A stretch of DNA of 64,000 bases from Lepidodermella squamata (taxonomy: Eukaryota > Animalia > Gastrotricha), in the NCBI GenBank assembly GCA_047495785.1, contig JBLDXI010000029.1:1674001-1738000 (forward strand). The letters run 5' to 3'. The position numbers and the translations under genes are program-made. This document shows, one piece after another, positions 1,835 to 54,645 of this stretch. The notes beneath the pieces are model-generated. The model did not search any database. It was not told the DNA's origin and was given only the letters and a program-made list of their open reading frames with translations. Position 1 is the first letter of the stretch. Each line of letters opens with the position of its first letter.

Positions 1835-4800
1835 CTAACGAATTCCATATCCTTCGAATCGGTGATTGCCGCGCAGAACTTTTGTTGCTAGATGCAGCTC
1901 GCTGTTGGTAAACTTTTGCCATTCTCGGCAAAAAAGTGTGCTGATCGGGACGGCGGAAAACCCAAGTGAATACCAGGCCACGGTGGCCGTCAATGCAGAA
2001 GGTTGCGTCCAAAATATGCCAGCTGTAGCAATCTCAGCTACGACAAAAACTGTGCAGCCATACAAACAGATTTTCAGATACTTCGTGTCAGCAATGACCC
2101 CTGGCTTCTGTAAAAGTTATTCCATTGAGAAGCGAAATCAATGAATGAAACAAAATTACCGTTCTTAACAGGAGAATCAGAAACGTCGATCTCAGAATTG
2201 CAATGACATTTGCAACTGCGATCACTGCAATGATACCCTGAGTAACAGCTGTGTTCATGTTTACGGAGCATGAGTAATAAGAAAATTGGTAAGCAATGCT
2301 AGTGAATCTCGACGAGGGTGGAAGTTGTGATTTTACTATCGCAATAGATATTGGTCTAATGCCAAACCAAATGACCAGAGAAGCCGCGATTAGGCTTGTA
2401 TAACCGATGATGAAGCTGACCCCTTTCTTCGTCAACCTCACAACTTCCTTCTGCAAAAAAATATTCGAGGAGCGAACCGATGACATTGTGAGCATGTAAC
2501 GATCAGCGAGTATTGATGCAATTTCTAGCTTCACGTATAGACTTCCAAAAATCATGGAGAACCCAAGAAAAAGAAGAATATAGGAAAATGTACAACTCCA
2601 TCCTATGTTACTTCCGCTCCAAGTTGCTATGAAGAAAACATGACACTGAATCAACAAGCATCCAATCAGGATCGCAAAGTTAACGGCTGGCAAGATTCTT
2701 ATCGAGCCCAAGTAACGTTTGCTAATAATTTTGAGGCGGAGTAATCCAATCGTTATAATGACAAACACCAAACCAGTGGCTGATATAAAATGTAATATAT
2801 TTACTCATGCTTAAAATTTAAATCCAACCTACCGTAGAGCGATCCGCCAACGTATGCATCAATTAGAGGCTTCATGATAACAATGATTTTGAGGCTGTCT
2901 GGTGGTGGATTGCCATCATAAGTGCTCCAGATTACTGGACTTCTCGCAACAACTTTGTATCCCATCTCGTTGTCCTGCTGATAAGCAAGAACGGGAACTA
3001 AGCCCCACCCGCCCAGCGAATTCTGGCGCATCTGGGAAATGGCAGTCAAGGAATACCCTGCCGACCATCCTTTCGCCTCCATATCAGGATCCAATGGGTA
3101 GTCATTGATTAAACCGCGAAAGCCAACGTTATAAATGCTCGTCTCCATTACACGGATGAAGTCATTACCTGACTTCTTGAATTTCTCGCCTCCGGTGACC
3201 CAGTCTGAAAGCGTCTCATTACCTAATGAAATGTGGTGGAATTTAATTTCGGGTATATTTACACTTTTAATTTACGTTGATTGAGTAGTTTCTCCGTTTC
3301 ATTTAGCCAAAAAGCCGTGAATAGTATGTTTTCATACATTCGAAGTGGGTTACTTATCGAGCTAGTGATGCGTGGCGGGTTTTCGATTCGATCATCCATG
3401 ATTGAGTCAAAGTCACGAGCTGACAATCCCGTGATGTCCGTCATGTTTCCATCGGCCAGTTCGGTGTTAGTGAGAACTGTGAGGAAAAAGGTGTATCGCA
3501 GCATCTCGACCAGCATTTCGGTAGTACACCACTGTCGAGTCAAAGGCGCGTTTGAGTAGTCGCCTGGAGTGGCAACAGAGGTGGCAATAAAGACATAATT
3601 GGGACCATAAACCCCTGTTTTGTACAGCAAGCATAAATAATCCACGGAATAATCGCCAGGTACAACGATTATTCGGGCGTCATTTACTGTTGCTTCCTCA
3701 ATTGCTCTCGCCATCCTTGCTAACGGGTCTGGGCAGGGATAAGACAGATCGACCGCAGCGTATCCAACGAGGGTCAAGTTTAGGTGATCCATCTCGCTGA
3801 GGAGTCTTCGTTCACGCTTGAAAATGCACAGTCACTATCTGGTATTTAAGATTACTTTCTTATCAGTTACCTCAAGCAACTGAGCTGCGTCTGAATTTAT
3901 TTGATTGATGAATGCGGCCCTTGTCCAACCGTTTTGCTTCATGAAGTGGGCGATCGCTGCTTGTCTGTCGACAAATGTTGTTCCGAAAGCGTAAAATGCT
4001 CGATTTAAGGCGCGGTCACTCATAATATCAGCATTTGCATAACAGGCAGACTGCAATCAAGCGTAGGTATATTATATAATATACGGAAGACAAAAAGGGT
4101 TTATAATCGCCTGAAGGCTTATATATTTCGGCCTGAGGCGCAGCACTATCAGCACTATTTAAACCCATATAACCTGATTGGCTTCCGTATATGTGTGTTA
4201 TCCGGGTCGAATCGTAAAATTTTCAGGGTTACTAGTATCGTATGGTACACTCTCGCAGAATTTCTATTGATTTGATTTGAAATTAAAAGATCCAACTTAA
4301 AAAAATCATGAAATTTGTTTCTTGCTCATTTTTTTCTCGCATTCTTCATTTTGCGAGTTTTTGGTTCGTTTTTCACAACGAATTTTCCGCATTTCTGGGA
4401 CGCCAAACAAATTGCTGGTGCTGAATCTTGCAATCGGGCTCTCGCACTGGTTCTGCTCGATTGGCTTCCGATGGCTATTAATGCGACTATCAATGGCAAC
4501 TCGGTTTGCAGAGCTGCTTCTAAATCGACGAAGAACACGATCGACGAAATCTTGAACGAATAGCTGCAATTTGTCACGGTTTCAGCAAACGCCCGACAAG
4601 ACTTGCTCGAATTCGTCTACTTCGCTCGATTCGCTGTGTCTTCTAGCTTTCACTGCCACAATCGATGCCGTGTTGCGATTTCTGGAATCCAATGCTGCCC
4701 GAGCTCTCTCGGATTTCATGGAAAGCTGGCCGATTGTTTTTTATTTCCGCGACATGTTGGACGAATTCTGCGCGAATTTCGCCAATTTCTGGACGAATTC

Positions 4801-5705
4801 TGCCCGAATTTCCCGAGCTCGTGGCTAAGTGCTGTTTGATTGGGGTGAATGCTGCCCGATTCGATGCCTGGCTTGTGCAATTTCTCCCGAAATTATGCCA
4901 AATTTTTCGCGATTCTTAATAAAATCGTTTTGGAGTGTTTGAAGTTTTTAGGGTTTCTCTTGTGTGTTTGACAAGTGGGGTTTTTGGTGATATTTTTTGG
5001 ACAGGCAGGGATTTTTTTGATATTTTTATATCAAAAAATGCCCGCCAGTTTAGAAAATATCAAAAAATTCCTGCTTGGAAGAAGGTTTTATGAGTTTATA
5101 ATTCGGCCATTAAGAAGGCATATTTTACGATACGATCCGGATAATAACCAGCAATAAACAAAAAATCTTATCGCATACCCCTGAAAAATTGTAATGATGG
5201 AAAACTGGTGGTTGTTTACGCCAGCCGCTGTTGAAACCTGCAAATACCGGCAACCGATCCAACTTTCCCGGCTCATGCAGTATTGGCATCAAACGGATTA
5301 AAGGGCTCGTGAAATACTATAAAGATGTGGACATCTTAGTTATAAATCTCTCTCCCTTTTTAAAGAAGGGTTACTAACCAACATATTCTCAGCCTCGTCG
5401 TATACATCAAGCACAAGTTCGTATTTTGGTAGTAGATTGGGGATCAGTTGCACGCGTTCAAGAGCCAATTGCATCGCCATGGAGCCAAGAGGACCTCTAG
5501 ACACCACCGGTGCGTAGGGGCTCATAGTCATGTTGTAGAAAAGTAAAGTGACTATGCCTATTTGCTTGCGAGAGGTCGTAGTTTGATTGCCTTGGGACGC
5601 TGTTAATCTAGCGGGCAACCTCGACTTGAGCATTGATAACTTGACTGTCTCGGTTTGAAGTATGGCTATGGCGAGTAACACGCAGACTCCGATTATTTTC
5701 CTCAT
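1835..5705 (-). CDS. Multi-exon class C GPCR, GABA-B-like architecture (Venus flytrap + 7TM, no Cys-rich linker)
   Basis: Signal peptide MRKIIGVCVLLAIAIL at 5705. VFT motifs in ORF pieces: AMQLALERV..LLPKYEL, FMKQNGWTRAA, ARIIV..CLLYKTGVYGPNYVFI. 7TM pieces (GFSMIFGSLYVK) at 2088-2771 and 1835-2065. Exon boundaries near 4150-5180 are uncertain. Confidence 0.8.
4198..5144. mobile_element. ~950 bp non-autonomous TIR element inside the GPCR gene
   Basis: TTATCCGGGTCGAATCGTAAAAT (4198) vs ATTTTACGATACGATCCGGATAA (ends 5144): 23-bp TIR with 2 mismatches. Interior has degenerate GACGAATTCTGC repeats. Confidence 0.65.
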
Positions 5706-5857
5706 TTTGTTGAAAAAAAGTGAGATTGATGGCGAATGCATGCAAGTGAATCTTTGGTCTCTTTCGAGTGCACACAATCTGACTAATCAGGTAATTGCAC
5801 AACGTACGTCACGTTCTATCCGCAGACAGGTTTTTTAACTTCAGCACTATTTCTGCA

Positions 5858-5985
5858 ACATAAATTGCAAGCCCGCCCTTCTCCGCGTCCCATCTTTTGT
5901 CACGCGCTATGCTATCACGTACAGGGTTCACGAACTGATAGCCAGGATATTTTTTAATTGGACCTTAACCACGCGAACAAGTTAT
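5858..5985. mobile_element. Partial inverted copy of the 1058-1257 MITE
   Basis: Reverse complement matches ~1135-1257 (GGTCCAATTAAAAAA..CAGTTCGTGAACCCTGTACGTGATAGC..GCGGAGAA.GGCGGGCTTG). Confidence 0.75.
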
Positions 5986-6538
5986 CATCACCTCATCAGT
6001 ATATTTGCCAGCTTTCTTCATTTCATCACAAAACGCAACGAAATCGATTAGCTTTTCAACGTGATCTGGCGCTAGCTTCTGACAAGTCGTCGTTCTTATT
6101 CGAATCGTCATATTATGTCTTGTCAAGACTTTGGCGATCCAACCATTAGAGGCCCTAAATGGCGCATCAACCATCAACACCACACTCGGCGCGTACTGCA
6201 ACCTTGCTTGGTTTCCAAATGTAAAAACTGATTAAAATAACTGAAAATGACGTTGGGAACAATTCGGATCGCTCATTGGGATATCTCGATCGGCAATTGG
6301 GAGAAATTGCCTTATACGATACGACATACACATTGAAAAGCATGAATATCAAACACATGATTTCATGACAAAAACGTTATTTCGGGTCGCAAAAGTCCTT
6401 GTATTTCATGCCTCTGAAGTTAGGGCTCGATTCTGTCCCCAAATTCATTTCGCGTGCTGAGTTTCATGGGTTTGAAAACTCAATGTTGCCTTTTTTCCTG
6501 TGTTCTTAACGAGGGGGCTTATATTTCGATAACTACGG
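5986..6538 (-). mobile_element. Truncated pogo/Tc2-type transposon: terminus plus CENP-B-type HTH transposase fragment
   Basis: Minus-strand end ta|CCGTAGTTATCGAAATATAAGCCCCCTCG matches the TIR family at 54029. ORF 5965-6201 reads FRASNGWIAKVLTRHNMTIRIRTTTCQKL..VEKLIDF, the F.AS.GW...RH....R..T..QKL signature of pogo/Tc5 HTH domains. It breaks off before the DDD domain. Confidence 0.8.
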
Positions 6539-6580
6539 TATTTGTATCATGCCTAACTGATAATATATGAGATTCTTATT

Positions 6581-6654
6581 CGGCACCTTTCGGCACCATT
6601 CGGCACCATTCGGCACCATTCGGCACCTTTCGGCACCATTCGGCACCACTCGGC
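6581..6654 (+). repeat. 10-bp tandem array (CGGCACCATT) x7.4
   Basis: Read directly: cggcaccttt cggcaccatt cggcaccatt cggcaccatt cggcaccttt cggcaccatt cggcaccact cggc. Confidence 0.97.
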
Positions 6655-6821
6655 CTTGCGCGCTGTTTAAACGCTGCGGAAAGATAGAAAGCGCTGAAGA
6701 ATAAATAAATAATAAAAAAATATAAATACATCTTCTATAAATATATAAAAAATAAAAAATATTATTTGTTTTGGCGTTTTTTTTGAATCGAAACGAGTCG
6801 TTGGTTACGAACAAAGAAGTC

Positions 6822-6871
6822 GGTAGCCGGTTACGACATAGGTAGCCGGTTACGGCATAGGTAGCCGGTTA
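6822..6871 (+). repeat. 19-bp tandem array (GGTAGCCGGTTACGRCATA) x2.6
   Basis: Units start at 6822, 6841 and 6860. Confidence 0.95.
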
Positions 6872-6970
6872 TGAAGTCTCACTGTGCAGAGCTGCAACCG
6901 TTATTCACTAGAACTTTATCCATCGATATTCTGCGACTATTTCTTCTGCTACACACAGTTATTCACAGTT

Positions 6971-7294
6971 ATGCCGATTTTTAACCCGTTCCACGCATCC
7001 TCTTGGGTGTTGGGTGGCGAAAACATCCCAAAAAATAACTCTGACATTGTTGTCTCGACGACGCTACCTGTGCCTGCTACAAGCAATGACACAGTTCTTA
7101 ACTCAATTTTAAATCTCGGCTGTGAAACGCATGCTCTTGCGATAACGATTGCATGCTTATCCATAACTTTGATCGCTATGACTGCAGTCTTCCTTGGTTG
7201 GTACCTCCGACGATTTCGCTGTTGCTGCAAAGCTAAGCCTAGCTGGAGATCATATTCTAATGGCCATACTCCGCTCACCAATACCCGATTTTAA
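6971..7294 (+). CDS. Small single-pass membrane protein (107 aa), unknown function
   Basis: ATG at 6971. S/T-rich N-terminus with sequons NNS and NDT, hydrophobic helix ALAITIACLSITLIAMTAVFLGWYL, then RRFRCCCK (positive-inside, palmitoylation-like). Confidence 0.55.
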   Translation: MPIFNPFHASSWVLGGENIPKNNSDIVVSTTLPVPATSNDTVLNSILNLGCETHALAITIACLSITLIAMTAVFLGWYLRRFRCCCKAKPSWRSYSNGHTPLTNTRF

Positions 7295-7717
7295 GTTAAT
7301 AATTTTACATTTTCTCTCTAGCATGAACGCATCAGCATTTTTAAAGTATTCTAATATGGACACTTCTATCTTCAGGTATGCCCCGCCCTACCAGCCGACG
7401 GAGGTCAAAATGCTCGCTGAGGTGTATCTGGCTCACCTCTTGATGGCGGTGTTATGGGGCTTCATGATGGGAAAGCTGATGTGACATCTGACTACTGACA
7501 TTCCTGTGAATTATCTACTATCGTGAAATCTATCTGAAAATATTTGCAATATCTATTTACATTCGCCGTTTTACAGCGGTACCAGTGAACAAAATGAACC
7601 TGTTTGCGTTCTAGTTTAGTCAATATATTCGCAATGGAGTTACATTTTTGCAACATTTTACTCTCAATAATATCAATTAAAGAATTCCATTCCTGATGTT
7701 TTTTAGACTTTTTCATC

Positions 7718-8891
7718 ATGTTTGTTCTGCTTCTCATCGTTTCGATTGCGAGCTCATTTGCTGATCCTGCTTCCGACGATTTCAAACTTCTCGACATATT
7801 CAAGTTAGATGACGAGAGTGTGGACCATATCATCAATAAGCGCGATGTCGCAGTAGAAAAGCAAGATACGCCGGAATTGTTCGAGCTGATAAGTGGCATG
7901 CAGTACGTCAGCAGCTACAGATCAGGTCCCAATGAATGTTTTGCTAACTTCACAAATATTGGTAAATGCATGTGGTCTGGCCAGACTTTATTTTCAGTTT
8001 ATTTTTTACTTTGCAGCGGAGAAAATGTGCAAATGGCCACTGACGCCGTCAGTTTGGGACGAGCTATCCTTCAAAATGCTTTCATGCATTCATTCCCACA
8101 ACTGTCATTCAATCACTTGTGTAACGAGACTGGATGACGACGCAATAAGGACATGGGCAACGATGCTCGGAGTCATTAGCCCAATCTGCGCATACTTCAC
8201 GACAAACTTCTCAACTTTCGCGTTTTCACACACATCATCTTTGTTTGAATCGTATAGCGCTGACGGAAATACTGCTATGCAGTTCATGCATCGTTTGCTT
8301 CGATTTCTTGGCCAGTTTCGCCCCATTCAGTTTCTCGTTTGCCATTTTTGGCCATTTTACCAGTTTCAGCCGGTTTTCACTGCCACGCATTACATCCCTC
8401 ACGTGATTTTCATCATTTTTGCTATGTGGAAGCAGTCACAACGAGGTTTTATTGCCGCAACGGTGAGCTTAGCCATCGAGCTTTTTTATACTCGCATTAT
8501 TTCTTATTGGCTCGGCAGAATTCTTTCTTTGATTTATCTGGATTTTTACACCGTGTCAATCTTTACGAGATATTTTATTCTCTTCGCTTTCTTTGGCCTC
8601 AAATCATTCCTCTGTTTCTATTACCTGGGCAATTTTTGTATTTTCATCTGGTCAACAACTTTTCTATACATCCGAAATATGTTCAGAGGCGATAAAATAG
8701 TTCACATTGAAATTGATACCAAAACGGTAAATCCTGAAAGTGAAGCTAAAACAGTTCAATTTGTAATTGAGGCCAAGGCACAAGATGACACAAAAGAATG
8801 CTCCTGCATGCACGGTGGCTGCGTGGCAACTAAAACTGCATCTGGTTGCTCTGGCTGTGGCAGGAGAGTGTCAAGCAGAAAGCGCAAGTGA
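7718..8891 (+). CDS. GEX1/Brambleberry/Kar5-like membrane protein, short form (exons 7718-7961, 8017-8891; 372 aa)
   Basis: A 55-nt GT-AG intron (7962-8016) joins the two ORFs in frame. Signal peptide, then C-x11-C-x18-C-x5-C-x4-C-x22-C with CVTRLDDDAIRTW...IC, about 3 TM helices, and a Cys-rich basic tail. Confidence 0.65.
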
Positions 8892-9161
8892 ACGAAAATC
8901 TCTCAGTTTTTTCAACTATTATTTGTATCACCCAAAATACTTTTTCAATCTAATCATATTTCCGAGTCGAGATTTTTCTCGTACATTTTTCTTACGCTTC
9001 AATAACAAAATTTTCATTGCTTCTGTCATTTCTTCTTGATTAATTATTTCAGTTTCCTTATTGCGTTTCTTATAGCGGCTCATAAAAATGTCCTGTTAAT
9101 CCAATTAAACCTTCAGGAAAAATAGCTGAACGTTTGTTTTCCATTCTTAGAAAAATTTACC

Positions 9162-11502
9162 ATGAGTGATATTCCGAACGCTGGAGAGGCTGCTGGCATC
9201 AATCCAGAAGCAAAACGAAGCGATAAGAATCTTGTGCGCGAGGAGAACGGTCGATTCGCACCTCAACTACCTTACAGTCGAAGAAATAGGATCAAACGCA
9301 ACTTGAATCGATTCTGCATCTTTTGCAAATTGAGCTTCTCAACAAGTTACCTGAAAAAGCATATAATGAAGTTTTGCGCGGACGCTAAGGTGGCTCCGGC
9401 AGCAGCAGTGGAAGAGGCTGTACGAAATGTTAGACGTGCCGTTATCGACAAAAATGTGTCCAACAAGCGTCCCGCCTCACCTGCTAAATCAAAACGTCCG
9501 TTTACAAATTTGGAAAACTTCTACACTCCAGGTGATGTTCAGAACAAAGCCTCAAAGCGCGCAGACGAAACATCACGCAATGAAATAAGCTGTCATATTT
9601 GTAACTCACTGCTATCTCAATCTGGGACTTCTTCTTCTGACATGAGCTGCAATTGCGGGCTTTCCAAGACTTCAAATCTGCCGGCTCAATCTGTCCGCGG
9701 GTCGCCGCAAGATTCTGAGCTTGGAACAAGCTGCCGCTGCTCTCGGTGTGGTTTGTCTACCCCTGCAAATCGTCATTCAACTGCTGCCTCTTCATCAAAT
9801 GAGAGTTGCCGATGCGAGTTTCCCTTAGGTAAAAAACTTTACTCGCTATAATGCCGGTTTTCATTTTCACTTTCAAATAACAGACGGAATACCCTATGAT
9901 TCTTCGACGCCTATCTTTCCAAGCGCAGTTGCGAGAAATTCATCTCACCCAGTTGGTTTTCGAAAACACGTTGACAGCATCAACTTGGTTCGTGCATCGA
10001 ATGCAGAAGATACTGGCGAAAGCAGCTTTGATGGCGAACAGAGCGGAAGCGACGCGCTTGAGACTGGCGAAAGCAGCTTTGATGGTGAACAGAGTGGAAG
10101 CGATGCGCTTAACTCAAGCTTTTCCAGCTTTTCATCGGATGACGACGACGATCCATTTCCTGCTACATTTGCTCACATGAAATCGCTACTAACCGCTGGT
10201 CTTTCCGAAATACCCATGCCAGCTACCACGTTAGCGAAAAAAGGTGCCGTAACAACAGGGCCGACTCGCCATCAACCTTCGATCAAAATCCCTGGCCCGT
10301 TGAAATGTATTTCAACTAGTTCTTTCGAGCAGAACGTAGCTTCTGGGTCCACCAACTCTGGCCCAACACGCAATTCTATGTCCAAGGACCTATTCAATCT
10401 GCTGAGGGTTCGGTACGGCGATCGTAATTTCATGATCTATAAGCACCAAGAACCACGGAACCAGAAAACAGTTGAAACCAGGTCTTCGGGGCTGAAGACA
10501 GTCGTCGAGTTGAGCGGTATTCAATGTCTGGCAGATATGTTCAACGTGGATTTATGGTTCGACTTTTTTCAAAGTGAAAAATCCATCTCTAGTAAATGGA
10601 AAAAAGTCGACAAAGTTAAACCTTCAACTTCCCACGGAAGATTGATTGCTGCTCGTGATTTTCTCTTAAAATACCGGGATGGGTTTTTAATTGATCGGAG
10701 GGAGACTACCAAGGCAGAGCGTGACGCATGCGACGAAGTCATCAAGGATTGTCTCGACCCCCAAATCAAAATATTGAATAGCCTTCGATGGAAGGCTAAT
10801 CAGGTTCGAAAGCATGTGCGTATAACTGAAAACGTCACCATCTTCACTGCCCTTAAGTATGGTCAATTTATCGAAGAATTTATCGCCAGTATGGAATCTC
10901 AAGGTCTTAAGGTTCCATACACCTACCGAGTCGCGTTGATCGCCGTCAAAATGAACGCGAAGAACGGTTGTCGGCCTACTAGTATATTTGGCATGAAACT
11001 GGACGAGTTTGAAGATGGTCGGAGTGAAATCCCTGGGACTAAAACTGTTTATGTAGGTGACACGAAGCTTTCACATGGCTGCTTCCCTTACGTCACTCTT
11101 GATGATGAGCTGATCAACTTGTACACAGAATATCTTGAAAAATATCGCCCTAAGCCCCAAAATTCTGAAAGTGAACCATACGTCCTTCTTCGTCGTGACG
11201 GCATGAAGTTCGAGAAGCTCAATTATTATGCCAATGCCTTGTGGGAAAGATTCCTGTTGAGCTTGCCTGAATCCGAACGGCCCAATAATGTCACCTCATT
11301 TAAGTTCTCCATGCAAAGACGCATGATGCAAACAGCTTTCCGTAATAATCGAGTTCGTGATTTGACGCCGGAGATGAAATTAATGGTAGATCAGTTTCTG
11401 CATCACACCGAGACTACTGCTGTTGCATCGTACCAGCAATACTCGGCGCCTACTGACCACGCTTTTATTTTTGCCAAGTTCAATTCATTTATGCGTAGCT
11501 GA
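9162..11502 (+). CDS. Zn-finger + tyrosine recombinase (exons 9162-9828, 9884-11502; 761 aa)
   Basis: A 55-nt phase-1 intron (9829-9883) fuses the ORFs in frame. N-terminal CxxC..H..C finger (FCIFCKLSFSTSYLKKHIMKFC). YR motifs: NGCRPTSI (R, 10972), GDTK (K), FSMQRR (R, 11317), FLHHTETTAVASY (H-x8-Y; Tyr at 11431). Confidence 0.85.
10012..10110 (+). repeat. 51-bp in-frame duplication (TGESSFDGEQSGSDAL x2) in the YR linker
   Basis: Units start at 10012 and 10063. Confidence 0.95.
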
Positions 11503-12371
11503 AATACTTGAAATTCCGATTGTTGATGATCCTGAACCGTGACGATCGTAATGCAATACTCTGAAGTTGCTATTATGTATTTATTATTTATTAATTTATT
11601 ATGAGTATCAGCGCAATTTTTTCACAATTACCAATTGGAATAAAGTTGGAAGGCGAATAAAACGCGGGATATGACTTTTTTACTCGTTTTGTTTCAATTT
11701 CAGGCAAATAAACGTATTTTAGCGGTATTCGTGGATTTATTTTTGCTGAATAAACTTTTTCAGGCTGGCTTCATCATTTTACAGTACCCTATAACAATAA
11801 ATCATTAGAAAACGCAATAAATCCGAAGATTCTGCTTTCCGTGCCAAAAATATAAAAATCTGCCCACGAATTATCTAACTGATAGATCTCCATATTACGC
11901 GTGAACAGTCATTTGAAGAGTTTTTAAGTTGTTTAGCCTTCAGAGCCTGTTGGTTCCAAGTATCAAGTTACAAATCAGTGTCTTCTCAGATATCAACCGT
12001 CAAGGAACTTTAAACTTTGATTCCAATAAGAATATAGGACCCTAAAAATATTGATATTCCTAAAACCAAAGTCATCGCAAAGCCCCTCAACAAAAATAGG
12101 ACGACTGTGCCCGCAAATAAACCGGACTTCTAGACAGGCCGATAGATTACAAGACGAAGCTTCGGCGATTTTAATAACAGGTTGAATAGAGCGGTCTTCA
12201 AAGCAAGCCCGAACTGAAAAATGTCGATGATCATTTTAAATAATGAGTAAATTGAAAGAAAAAGCGATCAAAATAGAAGAATGGAATACATACTAAGGTG
12301 GATTTTTTATTCCATTTTCAGGTGCTCGACAAATTAATATTTTAGAATTTTTGCGAATAAGAGGATATATG

Positions 12372-14181: not shown

Positions 14182-15122
14182 TTTCTACCGCTTCTCATCC
14201 AGCCAGCTCAGCTCTTTACACGTGTGTGATAGTATTGGAACCTGAAACTGCGTTTTTATTGATTCATTTTGCGGTGTTCTTGCATTTTATTCTTTCTCAT
14301 CATTCATTATTCATCCAGGAGTGAAGCACTCGATTGGCGCGTCTCCAATGCATAGTTCAACCTCCAATCGATTAATTAACCTTTTCATGTTACAGCTTCA
14401 AACTTGAGGCTAGATTCGTTAACAGTGACAATATTTGGTTGAATTTGAATATACGCAATCATAAATCGAAGAAATGAATTGCTTTTATACAATATTTTAG
14501 AGGATAAATTGCCTTGAAAGCCATTATTGGGAATAATATAAATTGATTCACACAAATTCCTAAATGTAAGGTTATTCATCGGATATTTCTACCCATCAGA
14601 TTCAGTAGTCCAGATTTCCAGGCCTTTGAATCCTGTTGGATAGCCGCCAAGATCATAGGAAATCGAAATCCAGGTGAAATCCACGCCACACAGCCCATTT
14701 TAAAATTAACATTAAATTTTGCATCCATCAGCCATCAAAATTCATCCATCCTAATTAAAATACTGCATTTGACCATCCTGAAAGTGCACACAGTTCGCCA
14801 GACGCATGTCACCTTGCTCTGCCACTTTAATCGATAAAAAAACTTGTGCGACGTGTCACATCGGAAGTTTGCGCGTAAACCTTAGCAATAAACTAAGCGC
14901 ACGCGAGAGAGAAAAAACAGCTAATAAAAATCTTCGTCATCCGCGCACTTGTTGTTGTTAGTTCAAATGATGATTATGATGACGGGTAGAAAACAACGCC
15001 CGGTGTCACATTTCACCATAGAGAGACTATAGCGCTAACCCCTAGCGAGATTTGACATCGCATAGTGTCAATTATTTTCACCCGGTTATTTTTGTATTAT
15101 TTTGAACAAAAAAATATCAACC

Positions 15123-16898
15123 ATGGGAGTATGCCAGTCGCAGGCCGCTGTCAAAACTGCTGAGCTCACTGCTGGTGTCACGCCGCCGGGCAATACCATC
15201 GGCGCGGAGATAAAGAAGCGGCTTAATTCGATCGGGAAAAAGAAGCCGACCGCCGCTGTTGCGTCGAAGCTGCCGAAAAAGCCGTCGGCTGGCAATTTGA
15301 AACGCGCCTCCATGGAGTCGAGCGAGTCGGTCGGCCTGCAGATGCGGCCGGCGGCGAATTCGGATCATTTCCACATGGAACTGCTCAAGTTGACGACGGA
15401 GGAAATTGTGCTGCTGTTCGAAACGTTCGAGCCAATCAAAAATAAGCGCGATTTAATCGCGGATGAAATTTATAAAAGGTTTCTCTCTTCATCTTTCATT
15501 TCAACTGAAATGTAATTTGCCGATTTCGTTTACAGTTTAAAAAGCAAGGTGCCCGGTGCTACCGACATCATGGACAAAATAGATCAACGCAACGACTCGT
15601 GGGAGAAAATTCCTCAAAGTGAGTCTCAGCTTTAAAATAGTTTCTTAACCCATTATATAGAGGGGCTCAGATAACAGATGAGAGAATTATCATTTCAGCT
15701 GTCGGAATTTTCTAAGAACATTGACATTCAAACTTCTTAAGATATTTTTCATAGAAAATCAAGGTCATTTTAACAAGTTCGAACATTGGACTGAATTTTA
15801 GGTATTGGATAGTAAATTGTGTAGTTTAGAGGTGTATGCAAATTCCAAAGCTGTCATCTTTCATCTTTCAGCCACTATTTTGCACACTATTTAAATCATA
15901 TTGGCTTGATTTAGCTTCATTTTACTTATCTGGCATATTCCAATTTCGAGCATTTCAGAGACGGAAACTAGCGGGAAAGCCTGAATTTAAATACTATCAA
16001 TTTTTAACTTGTGAACGCCGCTAGGGCTTCAATTCGATTTAGAGAACTGTTTGATGCAACCGGATGAAAACTTGAAGGTTGGAGACATCTCAAAATCTTT
16101 TTTGTGATATGAAGTTGAGGAAATTTAAAACTTGAATGATGATGATGGCTGGTCAGAGAAAATTGATCAGCTCAGTCGCCTTTTCAGGAAAATGCATATG
16201 TTTCGAAAACAATCTATTACATTTCTTCACTTTCTTTACCCTCTTTACAATTGGATGGTTAAAATTTAGGTTAAATTGAGGGTCAATAATCTATTTTAAT
16301 CAATTAGTTTCTTTGCTCGATTTGTTCCTTGATCTATGAATAGTATTTCTTAACTGTCTGTTTCTTTCCAGCTATCGTGCTTCTAAGTGGCGTGGAGAAG
16401 TGTTTACTGCGAATCAGAGACAAGCGCCGTGTCGAGGAATACCTGCGCAAATTAGTCGTCAGCCACGTGAAACACTTTGATGTATCAAAACAAATGTTCC
16501 TCGATGGCCTTGATGCAACTGGGGCCGTTGTGCTCAAACACATCGGCCAGCACCACACCCCACCTCCGAAGCCCGAAGACGACGAGACAACCCCGAAACA
16601 CATCTGGCAAAACTGTACCATCTGTACGACATGGGCTCGTTTCTTCGAACTGCTGCATAAATCGCTAGAGAAAATTAATACGGAATCACGAGGACACATG
16701 GCACTTTCGAAAGCAATTTCCGCTCCGGTCGGCTACGTCCTACCCCCTACTGCCATAGCGTTAGACGCTGAGGTGTGCCCGATCGAGGAGCACGCACCTG
16801 CTGGCATTCAAAAGAGCCTACCCCTAGCTGTAGAATGTCCAGTCTCATCCCTTCGCCAGCAGACGATTGCTGAAGAAGCGCCCGAAGATGCAACTTGA
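15123..16898 (+). CDS. N-acylated globin-like protein 1 (exons 15123-15478, 15536-15618, 16372-16898; 321 aa)
   Basis: MGVCQS N-terminus. A helix LTTEEIVLLFETF; phase-2 intron at B12 (IYK-S); C2 Pro; E7 Gln; F-helix LRKLVVSH (proximal His) followed by FDVSKQMF; H helix W..FF. Confidence 0.75.
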
Positions 16899-52481: not shown

Positions 52482-54028
52482 AACTCTCCGGTGTAGCAAC
52501 TGCAAATAAAAAAACTATAGATGCCGGTGCAATTAACTTGCTTCCTGCGCATATAATCGTCTTTAGATAACAAAAAAACGTAACGTTTTTTATCTCTGGC
52601 ACCCGGCAGTGTTTATTAATCAGAAGCTGTACGAGATGAACTTGACGCTATAGAGTTGTAGGCGTGGAATCGGTGTTATATAATAAAAAGTGCGTGTTTT
52701 AATACGCTGTGTATTGTGCGTTAACTCCTAATTAGACGGCTCTTGGGCGTAACGATACATTATGTCTGGCTTCCGGTCATCTTATCGCAATAACAATGCT
52801 TTGTTTTAAGCCGGCGCAACGTCATACAGCATGGCATGATATATATGTATCTGGTGCATAATAGTCATTTTTGTACCTTGCAAAAGGTAGAAATTATTAT
52901 CCTGGAAATTAATTATTTTAAACCTAGATTACCTTGACCTGGTATTCAAACCGAACGGAATGTTAAAAGGGCACGCCCAACTGATTACTAGCGCACGTGC
53001 TTGTGCACTTTGGCTAGGAAAACTTCACGTGACCAATTATATCTTTTTCCAGGCTTTGCGAACCAGTGTAATCAATTCTGGCAAAGTTACTGCCCTAGTA
53101 AAATCTGAAACGGTTTTGGTACAGTCGGAAGTTCTTCGCTGCTTGGTACATAGGTCATAAGAACGCTTCCGAATCCACAAAAGTAGGTTAAATAACCTGC
53201 CGAGCATGACCGGTAATAACGGGCAAAGCACGCTTGAAGTTTCTATTGAAGCTTGAAGTTGCGGGTTCACAGACTCACGATTTGTCGCGCGTGGTGTCTG
53301 GACAAATCTGGACTGTGGGCGGAGTCACACGTGTCCCGAGTGTCGCATCAACGTCGCGCGCGAGGGTGTTCACCTTAGAGAAATAGAGATAGAATTATTC
53401 TGGGCCCAGAATTGAGCCGCAGTTTGCCGCGCGCAACAGTATTTTCAAGCGTGACTATCTGTGTTTGTCGAGTCGCTGTTTTCTCGCTGTGAAAAAAGTA
53501 AAATTCAGGCACCCCAATAGAAGTTATCGGGGGCCCGGAATGTGACCATGGTATTCATTTGAAATACAGGGAAGTCGGTACCCGGTTAACCGGGTAAAAA
53601 TTCATTTTATGCGTAACTTCATGAATAATCAAAATATATTAGGTCAAACGGAATTCAGGTCAATCTCAATGAAAAGTCATGTTTTATTACGCTCATGAGA
53701 CACATCTCTCAGGTATACAGCATGTTTTGATAAATATTACATATTTTTCATAATTATTATAACGAATTAAAGCGCGATGAGGAAAAAATTGTTTTAAAAG
53801 ACGCAGAGCACAGCGCAACTTAGGCAATAAACGTAACCAACCTTTTGAAGGCATTGAGCGCATCATTCATCGATTTTCCAACAACAAAACACGGTCACTT
53901 GATACATATGATAATAAAAAAAAATCCGAAAAAATATGCCAGCATATCTTTGACTTACTGCGATGAAAATGGAAATTCAAGTGAAGTAACAACCTAAAAT
54001 CACATTAATGTCGGCGACGCCACACATA

Positions 54029-54416
54029 CCGTATTTACCGAAATATAAGCCTCCCCTCGTTTAGAGGCCTGTCTCGTTTAGAAGCCTAGGTAAATTAGAA
54101 TTCTTCGATGCATAGTCCTATCTCAAATAGTAGCCTAGGCTACTACGGCATGTAGGCTCTCCCGAGCTTAAAGGTTATAGCAACGAAAAATGCCTGAAGA
54201 TGTTTGATAATCTGCGACGATGATTTTTGTTGTGGCGCTCCTTATTTTCAGCTATTAGGCGACCTGGGTAATAGCTAGTAACGAAAAATTATGCCACGTC
54301 TTCGTTGCATAAGCCTATCTCAAATAGAAGCCTAGTGTTGAATAGTAGCCTACTTTTCCCCAATTTTCGAGGTATCATTTTTGCATAAGCCCGGGTTAGT
54401 ATTTCGGTAGCTACGG
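54029..54416. mobile_element. pogo/Tc2-family MITE
   Basis: ta|CCGTATTTACCGAAATATAAGCC ... ATTTCGGTAGCTACGG|ta; internal TAG(A/T)AGCCTA repeats. Confidence 0.8.
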
Positions 54417-54645
54417 TATTTAATACTTGAACTTACTACACGAAAAATAGGACCAACGTGAGATCAATTGAGGTCCTCTTATGAAAAATACTAAGCGTGC
54501 GTTGAAAAAAACGTGAAAGATGATCGATGACAAAAGAAGATCGCTATTATTTCGCCTACATTTTCTATTGCCAACGGGTCGCTTTTTAGTCGCATAATAA
54601 TGTTAATTACGAGGATAATAATACAGTTTTTTGATCGATGATGAA

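Follow-up and report, generated by a model that had tools for sequence, protein, structure and literature searches.

Cryptons are DNA transposons mobilized by a tyrosine recombinase (YR) and comprise the CryptonA, CryptonI, CryptonF and CryptonS groups (PMC3212892, PMC13465315). YR elements with conserved cargo have been documented in fungi, whereas animal Cryptons have been described as carrying little beyond the recombinase. Here we analyze a 5.3-kb block at positions 6553-11884 of a 64-kb stretch (hereafter the window) of a Lepidodermella squamata contig. Following two tandem arrays, the block contains four co-oriented genes: two small membrane open reading frames (ORF A and ORF B), a spliced gene for a multi-pass membrane protein (gene C), and a YR gene. 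Its gene set is conserved across distant relatives, one of which is inserted at several loci. We are highly confident that the block is a YR element; the fuller account, in which it is a copy of a small autonomous invertebrate YR element equipped with a membrane module, we place slightly above even.

The first-pass annotation had listed two tandem arrays, a small transmembrane (TM) ORF, a spliced six-Cys membrane gene and a zinc-finger YR gene, and all of these are present and co-oriented, with the arrays at 6578-6654 and 6822-6871; ORF B was absent from its list. On the forward strand, gene C consists of exon 1 (7718-7961), which encodes the predicted signal peptide and first conserved cysteine and is supported by relatives and by a profile built without the window sequence, a 55-nt intron (7962-8016), and exon 2 (8017-8891), which encodes cysteines two to six, four to five hydrophobic helices and a Cys-rich tail. 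The YR gene, also on the forward strand, comprises exon 1 (9162-9828), with an N-terminal C2HC-type zinc finger and a Cys/Ser-rich linker, a 55-nt intron (9829-9883), and exon 2 (9884-11502), with an acidic linker, a helical core domain and the catalytic domain. As annotated, each spliced gene thus has a single 55-nt intron; both introns are GT-AG and phase 1, the exons join without a stop, and the two halves of each gene share one reading frame in relatives, which supports both splice models. The description of the YR gene as intact holds insofar as its frames are open and free of stops. Spliced genes were searched exon by exon, and cysteine positions across the gene C intron were obtained by arithmetic.

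Direct scans of the window ORFs against Pfam, PHROGs, NCBIfam and PDB gave no YR assignment, and a word-based homologue search with exon 2 of the YR gene and of gene C was blank, as was an exact look-up of ten window ORFs in a 15-billion collection. An exhaustive phmmer search of 1.8 billion proteins recovered nine distant relatives of the YR, at 20-44% identity, and two further matches that are repeat artefacts. The sole PDB match of the resulting YR family profile is an archaeal XerC-like recombinase (4a8e, E=0.005), in an alignment that covers the catalytic Lys, Arg, His and Tyr, and one relative (P0005) matches Phage_integrase (PF00589) at E=7e-4, below the curated cut-off. The predicted catalytic residues of the window YR are encoded at 10972 (Arg), 11065 (Lys), 11317 (Arg), 11404 (His) and 11431 (Tyr); all five are aligned and conserved in the family, the first Arg lying within a nearly invariant RP motif. 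The window zinc finger is 47% identical to that of P0001 over 30 residues (E=2e-8), and P0010 matches zf-C2HC_2. Because in the relatives this finger and the YR domain share one ORF, the match validates the YR splice model. None of the 11 members has a Pfam match to DUF3504, DUF3435 or GCR1_C. A single-sequence model of the YR reached a predicted local distance difference test (pLDDT) score of 37, and a fold search with that model is meaningless. The acidic linker contains a 51-nt in-frame duplication (10009-10110).

Relatives were fetched from assemblies CAOS20-1/SAMN13674978, from run SRR10912803, and from assemblies that have proteins in common with these. All eight placed YR relatives come from one marine metagenome study, presumably the polar seawater study PMC7119284 (0.22 µm filter), in whose supplements the accession was not found; the introns of the relatives point to eukaryotic hosts. 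Two of them, L001 and L002, show the same order as the window (TM ORF, small ORF, six-Cys membrane gene, zinc-finger YR) in ~5 kb between satellite arrays. One relative with this order is 5.4 kb long. The L001/L002 YR is 35% identical to that of the window, and the counterpart of gene C exon 2 is 31% identical over 258 columns (E=3e-29); the profile built without the window sequence recovers both gene C exons. In L019 and L006 gene C precedes the YR, whereas in L007 it comes after the YR and is itself followed by an ORF-A-type gene; gene order thus varies among these elements, whose YRs are 22-33% identical to the window YR. As a case against its own proposal, the first-pass annotation had named YR copies elsewhere that consistently lack the membrane genes; the gene C and ORF-A-type genes of the relatives contradict this. 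Its proposal of an animal YR element with a membrane module gains support, in the form of a heritable membrane-gene module, from relatives that carry the module, one of them inserted at multiple loci. Judged from sequence comparison, gene C and the YR are both under purifying selection (pN/pS of 0.25 and 0.30, respectively, in a comparison of L001 with L019 whose synonymous sites are saturated).

In a tree of ten YRs, a 99/98 branch separates the five gene C carriers, which span three deep sub-lineages, from the rest, a clustering that, with few rows, is not significant against shuffles. The other side (L003-L005, L013-L015) carries different cargo, including an unknown gene family that has two paralogues in L003-L005. 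In L013-L015, a sister lineage by YR, a convergent HUH-motif ORF stands beside a superfamily-3 helicase (PPV_E1_C, E=3e-4), with no capsid seen; these rolling-circle Rep/helicase and unknown genes lie on the reverse strand at 813-1 and 2980-2666 of L013, 2489-2202 and 2205-1480 of L014, and 1615-1163 of L015. No relatives were found in IMG/VR, PHROGs, phage genomes, BFVD, GTDB genomes, JGI metagenomes or Rfam, and a motif scan of the JGI metagenomes gave one match, which lacked a YR. Bacterial contamination is ruled out by the introns, the metazoan flanks and the lack of prokaryotic relatives. The introns of gene C and of the YR gene sit at different places in the window (7962-8016, 9829-9883), L001 (~2471-2527, 4828-4881) and L019 (before ~376), implying repeated intron gain or loss within the element family. 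Gene C changes frame in L006 (~796-833) and carries an in-frame 237-bp deletion in L008, near 3046.

Evidence of mobility comes from three relatives, L007, L008 and L009, which are 99.7-100% identical yet have three unrelated left flanks and share one A-rich junction (L007:592, L008:465, L009:50). This combination identifies a recently multiplied element among the relatives, as distinct from the window copy. Another pair, L011 and L012, diverges sharply 36 bp past the YR stop (L011:2594, L012:1823). The junctions of both groups are preceded by short A runs; they are likely true ends and hint at A-rich target cores. For the window copy, the best candidate end pair is a 10-bp direct repeat, CTAACTGATA, on the forward strand at 6553-6562 (left) and 11875-11884 (right), which occurs twice in the 64 kb. 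It also contains a Myb-type hexamer and may be a recombination core; a match of that length arises in ~3% of matched controls. No terminal repeat was identifiable in L001 or L002, the right end of the L007 group was not found in the contigs, and no fetched contig showed terminal overlap as a sign of a circle. The L019/L020 junction was rejected as an element end, being within an intron; L019/L020 on one side and L016/L017 on the other make up the two halves of a single YR copy, which an inverted-repeat insertion has split.

The defining features of Kar5, GEX1 and Brambleberry proteins are a signal peptide at the N-terminus, a domain with six cysteines followed by one or two coiled coils, and two or three TM helices at the C-terminus; sequence conservation among them is confined to the Cys domain (PMC4291462, PMC10609895). 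By phase arithmetic gene C encodes 372 residues (family range 270-370). From hydropathy alone, a signal peptide is predicted at residues 1-19, which are hydrophobic, of window exon 1, P0021, L006 and L001. The six N-terminal cysteines of gene C, at residues 74, 86, 105, 111, 116 and 139, are separated by gaps of 12, 19, 6, 5 and 23; the gaps are 12, 19, 12, 7, 24; 12, 19, 12, 16, 25; and 12, 21, 13, 6, 22 in relatives, and 12, 23, 14, 11, 25 in Kar5p (positions from PMC4291462). All four gene C subtypes combine the predicted signal peptide with six cysteines whose first gap is exactly 12 and whose last is 22-25, in line with Kar5p. Three hydrophobic segments are found in P0021 and five in window gene C, P0020 and P0023. 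The residues between the fifth and sixth cysteines may also resemble plant GEX1, which is a lead only.

The small membrane ORFs are less conserved in sequence. ORF A (6971-7294, forward strand) encodes a predicted 107-residue single-pass membrane protein with a Ser/Thr-rich N-terminus, a TM segment at ~56-74 and a basic, Cys-rich tail; this architecture is common to L001, L018 and L024, and pairwise comparison with these counterparts gave no significant similarity. ORF B (7323-7484, forward strand; 53 residues, one hydrophobic segment) has a positional counterpart in L001 and L002, to which its similarity spans 9 residues (E=0.007). The subterminal 10-nt tandem array (6578-6654, forward strand) comprises 7.7 copies of ATTCGGCACC. 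Related GCAC-ATT 10-nt repeats occur in L001, L011 and L004; the window motif itself is also in L011 (0/200 shuffles), with a related motif in L001 and L004. As a signal of the family, this array has better support than the 10-bp direct repeat has as the element ends. A 19-nt array (6822-6871, forward strand; 2.6 copies) lies in the putative ORF A promoter and has a Myb-like hexamer in each unit. Relaxed Myb-type hexamers upstream of ORF A number 6 in the window, 4 in L001 and 5 in L024, with none clustered in L018; under the strict consensus (PMC2797782) the counts in the first three are 2, 2 and 3. The motif had been spotted before it was tested, and its clustering is no more than a pointer to possible expression in the germ line or the cell cycle.

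We propose that gene C may encode an endoplasmic reticulum or nuclear-envelope protein with a lumenal six-Cys domain of the Kar5/GEX1/Brambleberry type. By analogy with Cryptons (PMC3212892), the zinc-finger YR would recombine short sites at both ends, excise the element as a circle and reintegrate it elsewhere at short, A/T-rich cores. The retained introns argue against an RNA step in transposition and, together with the varying gene order, fit a DNA circle. The membrane module would then serve the element's own transmission: gene C and the small single-pass proteins might act at nuclear-envelope contacts of germ cells or of the zygote, so that a second nucleus is opened to the excised circle. 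This transmission role is the least secure part of the account, and we advance it tentatively, at clearly less than an even chance. It is somewhat unlikely, in our estimate, that the family constitutes a new class of animal integrative elements with a captured or shared Kar5/GEX1/Brambleberry Cys-rich domain and a dedicated membrane module that moves the circle between nuclei or steers pronuclear fusion to the elements' advantage; with the same reserve, and in view of the sister branch with its rolling-circle Rep, the family could on that reading be a eukaryotic counterpart of bacterial integrative, self-transmitting elements.

Several observations weigh against this account. Statistical support for the YR assignment is modest, and in the HxxR motif the first His is replaced by Ser in the window and by Ser, Gly, Asn or Gln across the family, where it is never His; its replacement in every member makes the non-canonical active site a family trait, not decay of the window copy. 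There is no second copy of the block within the 64-kb window, and the sister branch lacks gene C, which is therefore dispensable for mobility as such. In gene C the coiled coil is missing: ~60 aromatic-rich residues with low heptad scores precede the first TM segment, and a model of P0021 has one 37-residue helix. Kar5p no longer functions once either coil is deleted (PMC4291462). The hydrophobic segments number four to five, against two or three in the known proteins. A tolerant six-Cys pattern was reached by 0.04-0.2% of shuffles, rates that are optimistic given that the spacing tolerance was fixed after the data had been seen. Gene C and its relatives matched neither Tht1 nor any other Pfam family, named protein or PDB sequence, in searches whose word-based part is insensitive and length-limited and whose targets included no solved structure or reference sequence of the Kar5/GEX1 family. 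A model of a gene C relative (pLDDT 62, ~80 in the Cys domain) likewise matched nothing in a fold search. The first-pass annotation had called gene C nuclear-envelope-fusion-like; in common with Kar5/Tht1, GEX1 and Brambleberry it indeed has a predicted signal peptide, six similarly spaced cysteines near the N-terminus and predicted membrane helices toward the C-terminus, whereas the missing coiled coil and the blank homology searches speak against the label. Given the absent coil, the extra segments and the blank searches, we do not file gene C in the Kar5/GEX1 family and describe it as Kar5/GEX1-like in predicted architecture. Common ancestry of its six-Cys domain with Kar5/GEX1 we regard as moderately probable.

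Spok in Enterprise and peel-1/zeel-1 offer parallels for a different role, that of a selfish distorter, in which gene C would be a coil-less decoy that disturbs the nuclear-fusion protein of the host, or the membrane ORFs a toxin-antidote pair, so that inheritance is skewed or loss of the element is punished. Gene C does retain the Cys domain without the coil that Kar5p needs, small membrane ORFs accompany it, and in cotton a point change in the Cys-rich domain of GEX1 causes delayed karyogamy and uniparental haploids (PMC13763932). Database scans, however, did not connect the sequences with any known toxin or antidote, and a constructive role would explain the prolonged purifying selection in different hosts just as well; we consider distortion unlikely. 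Somewhat less likely again is cell-to-cell spread of a capsid-less plasmid- or virus-like replicon whose membrane proteins sit at the cell surface, for fusion or budding or as a channel, and whose six-Cys pattern is convergent. The pairing of the same YR with an HUH Rep and a superfamily-3 helicase in L013-L015 is consistent with such a replicon, as is the gene order that varies among relatives in the way expected of circles with exchangeable modules. The ORF A architecture, kept in four elements, has the outline of a small fusogen, with a short ectodomain, one TM segment and a basic, Cys-rich tail, but its features are generic to small membrane proteins; moreover, the block has no capsid, packaging ATPase or polymerase gene, and searches of IMG/VR, PHROGs, phage genomes and BFVD found no relatives.

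The block could instead be a domesticated or immobile locus, derived from such an element but by now a fixed host cluster with gene C as the host's nuclear-fusion gene. It has one copy in the window, host-like composition, host-sized introns and ends that are candidates. Yet it sits in a repeat-rich intergenic gap of a receptor and ankyrin gene cluster, the relatives have unrelated flanks, several diverged lineages of them co-occur in one study, and one is present at multiple loci. Whereas domesticated DUF3504 genes lack kept catalytic residues (PMC3212892), the block's YR keeps the catalytic Arg, Arg, His and Tyr, and we hold domestication to be improbable. As for a lone YR lying by chance beside unrelated host membrane genes, ORF A and ORF B are indeed barely similar to their counterparts, but gene C adjoins the YR in four other elements (L001, L019, L006 and L007) from three deep YR sub-lineages, which refutes this notion and leaves it hardly any weight.

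The genomic setting agrees with the first-pass annotation, which placed a pogo relic on one side and a convergent host gene on the other; the block fills the space between the two. The pogo/Tc5-type relic (5965-6541, reverse strand) ends in TA at 6540-6541, outside the element; it has a weak Tc5 helix-turn-helix match at 5965-6201 (E=0.013), and its terminal inverted repeat (TIR; 6504-6545) matches a miniature inverted-repeat transposable element (MITE) at 54022-54065. A pogo-type MITE with TA ends occupies 54027-54418, and a second dispersed repeat (5761-5984, also 862-1259) truncates the relic beside the block. The convergent host gene, which encodes NHL repeats, lies on the reverse strand from ~12334. 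Neighboring genes, including arrays of class C G protein-coupled receptor (GPCR) and ankyrin paralogues, SLC6, F5/8, IgGFc-binding and PAN, indicate an invertebrate animal host and rule out human DNA. From this host the block is indistinguishable in trinucleotide and CpG composition. Introns of the adjoining GPCR gene are 52-53 nt long, compared with 55 nt in the block. The GPCR paralogues (ANF_receptor plus 7tm_3) comprise five intronless copies, ~80% identical, and one spliced copy; together with interleaved short ankyrin-repeat genes, several having a C-terminal hydrophobic tail, they form a host cluster at 2088-5777, 21269-43597 (reverse strand) and 18848-48781 (forward strand). At 15102-15515 and 16377-16898 lies what is probably a spliced globin-like gene, its N-terminus bearing an MGxC motif; Pfam gave no match at E 0.01.

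A family of compact animal elements whose modules can be exchanged adds to the known mobilome. Should gene C prove a relative of Kar5/GEX1, no earlier case of one encoded by a mobile element would be known; it would bear on how a circular intermediate gets back into a nucleus and provide a naturally minimized variant for testing whether the Kar5/GEX1 family is an inner-nuclear-membrane fusogen (PMC4291462). As a compact enzyme adapted to eukaryotes, with short target cores, the YR may find use as an integration tool as well.

Among known systems, gene C differs from Kar5/Tht1, GEX1 and Brambleberry in its length of 270-370 residues, its lack of a coil and of any sequence or hidden Markov model match, and its carriage by a mobile element. 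The literature searched contained no element with this gene set, and no paper with both "tyrosine recombinase" and a GEX1, Kar5 or brambleberry term. The block has a YR without reverse transcriptase, RNase H or TIRs, as a Crypton does; the reverse transcriptase with split or inverted terminal repeats that marks DIRS, Ngaro and VIPER elements is absent. Like Cryptons, the family is eukaryotic, has the YR as its sole mobility enzyme, tolerates introns, and may have a short terminal direct repeat and a presumed circular intermediate; none of the searches, however, brought up a Crypton sequence. It departs from them in lacking a DUF3504 or GCR1_C match and the HxxR His, in its N-terminal zinc finger, in a candidate repeat of 10 bp rather than 4-6 bp, and in three extra membrane-protein genes, where the known second genes of Cryptons encode a C48 peptidase, a DDE transposase or a helix-turn-helix protein. 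With Starships it shares YR-driven mobilization of a eukaryotic element with additional genes (PMC10104507, PMC11162782), yet it measures ~5 kb, not tens to hundreds of kb, resides in an animal, has no DUF3435 captain, places the YR last rather than first, and carries a small conserved module as cargo. Polinton-like and MELD viruses and Replitrons/CRESS resemble it in coupling a YR integrase to a eukaryotic replicon, the sister branch having an HUH Rep and superfamily-3 helicase (PMC4642659, PMC11071296, PMC10288648); the block itself has no capsid, ATPase, polymerase or Rep and is far smaller than Polinton-like viruses, and DNA-virus searches for capsid, packaging and replication genes in it were blank. 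The family would thus work like a Crypton or a miniature Starship and yet fails the domain tests of both; matching neither Starships nor DUF3504 Cryptons, it is apparently an undescribed family of YR elements.

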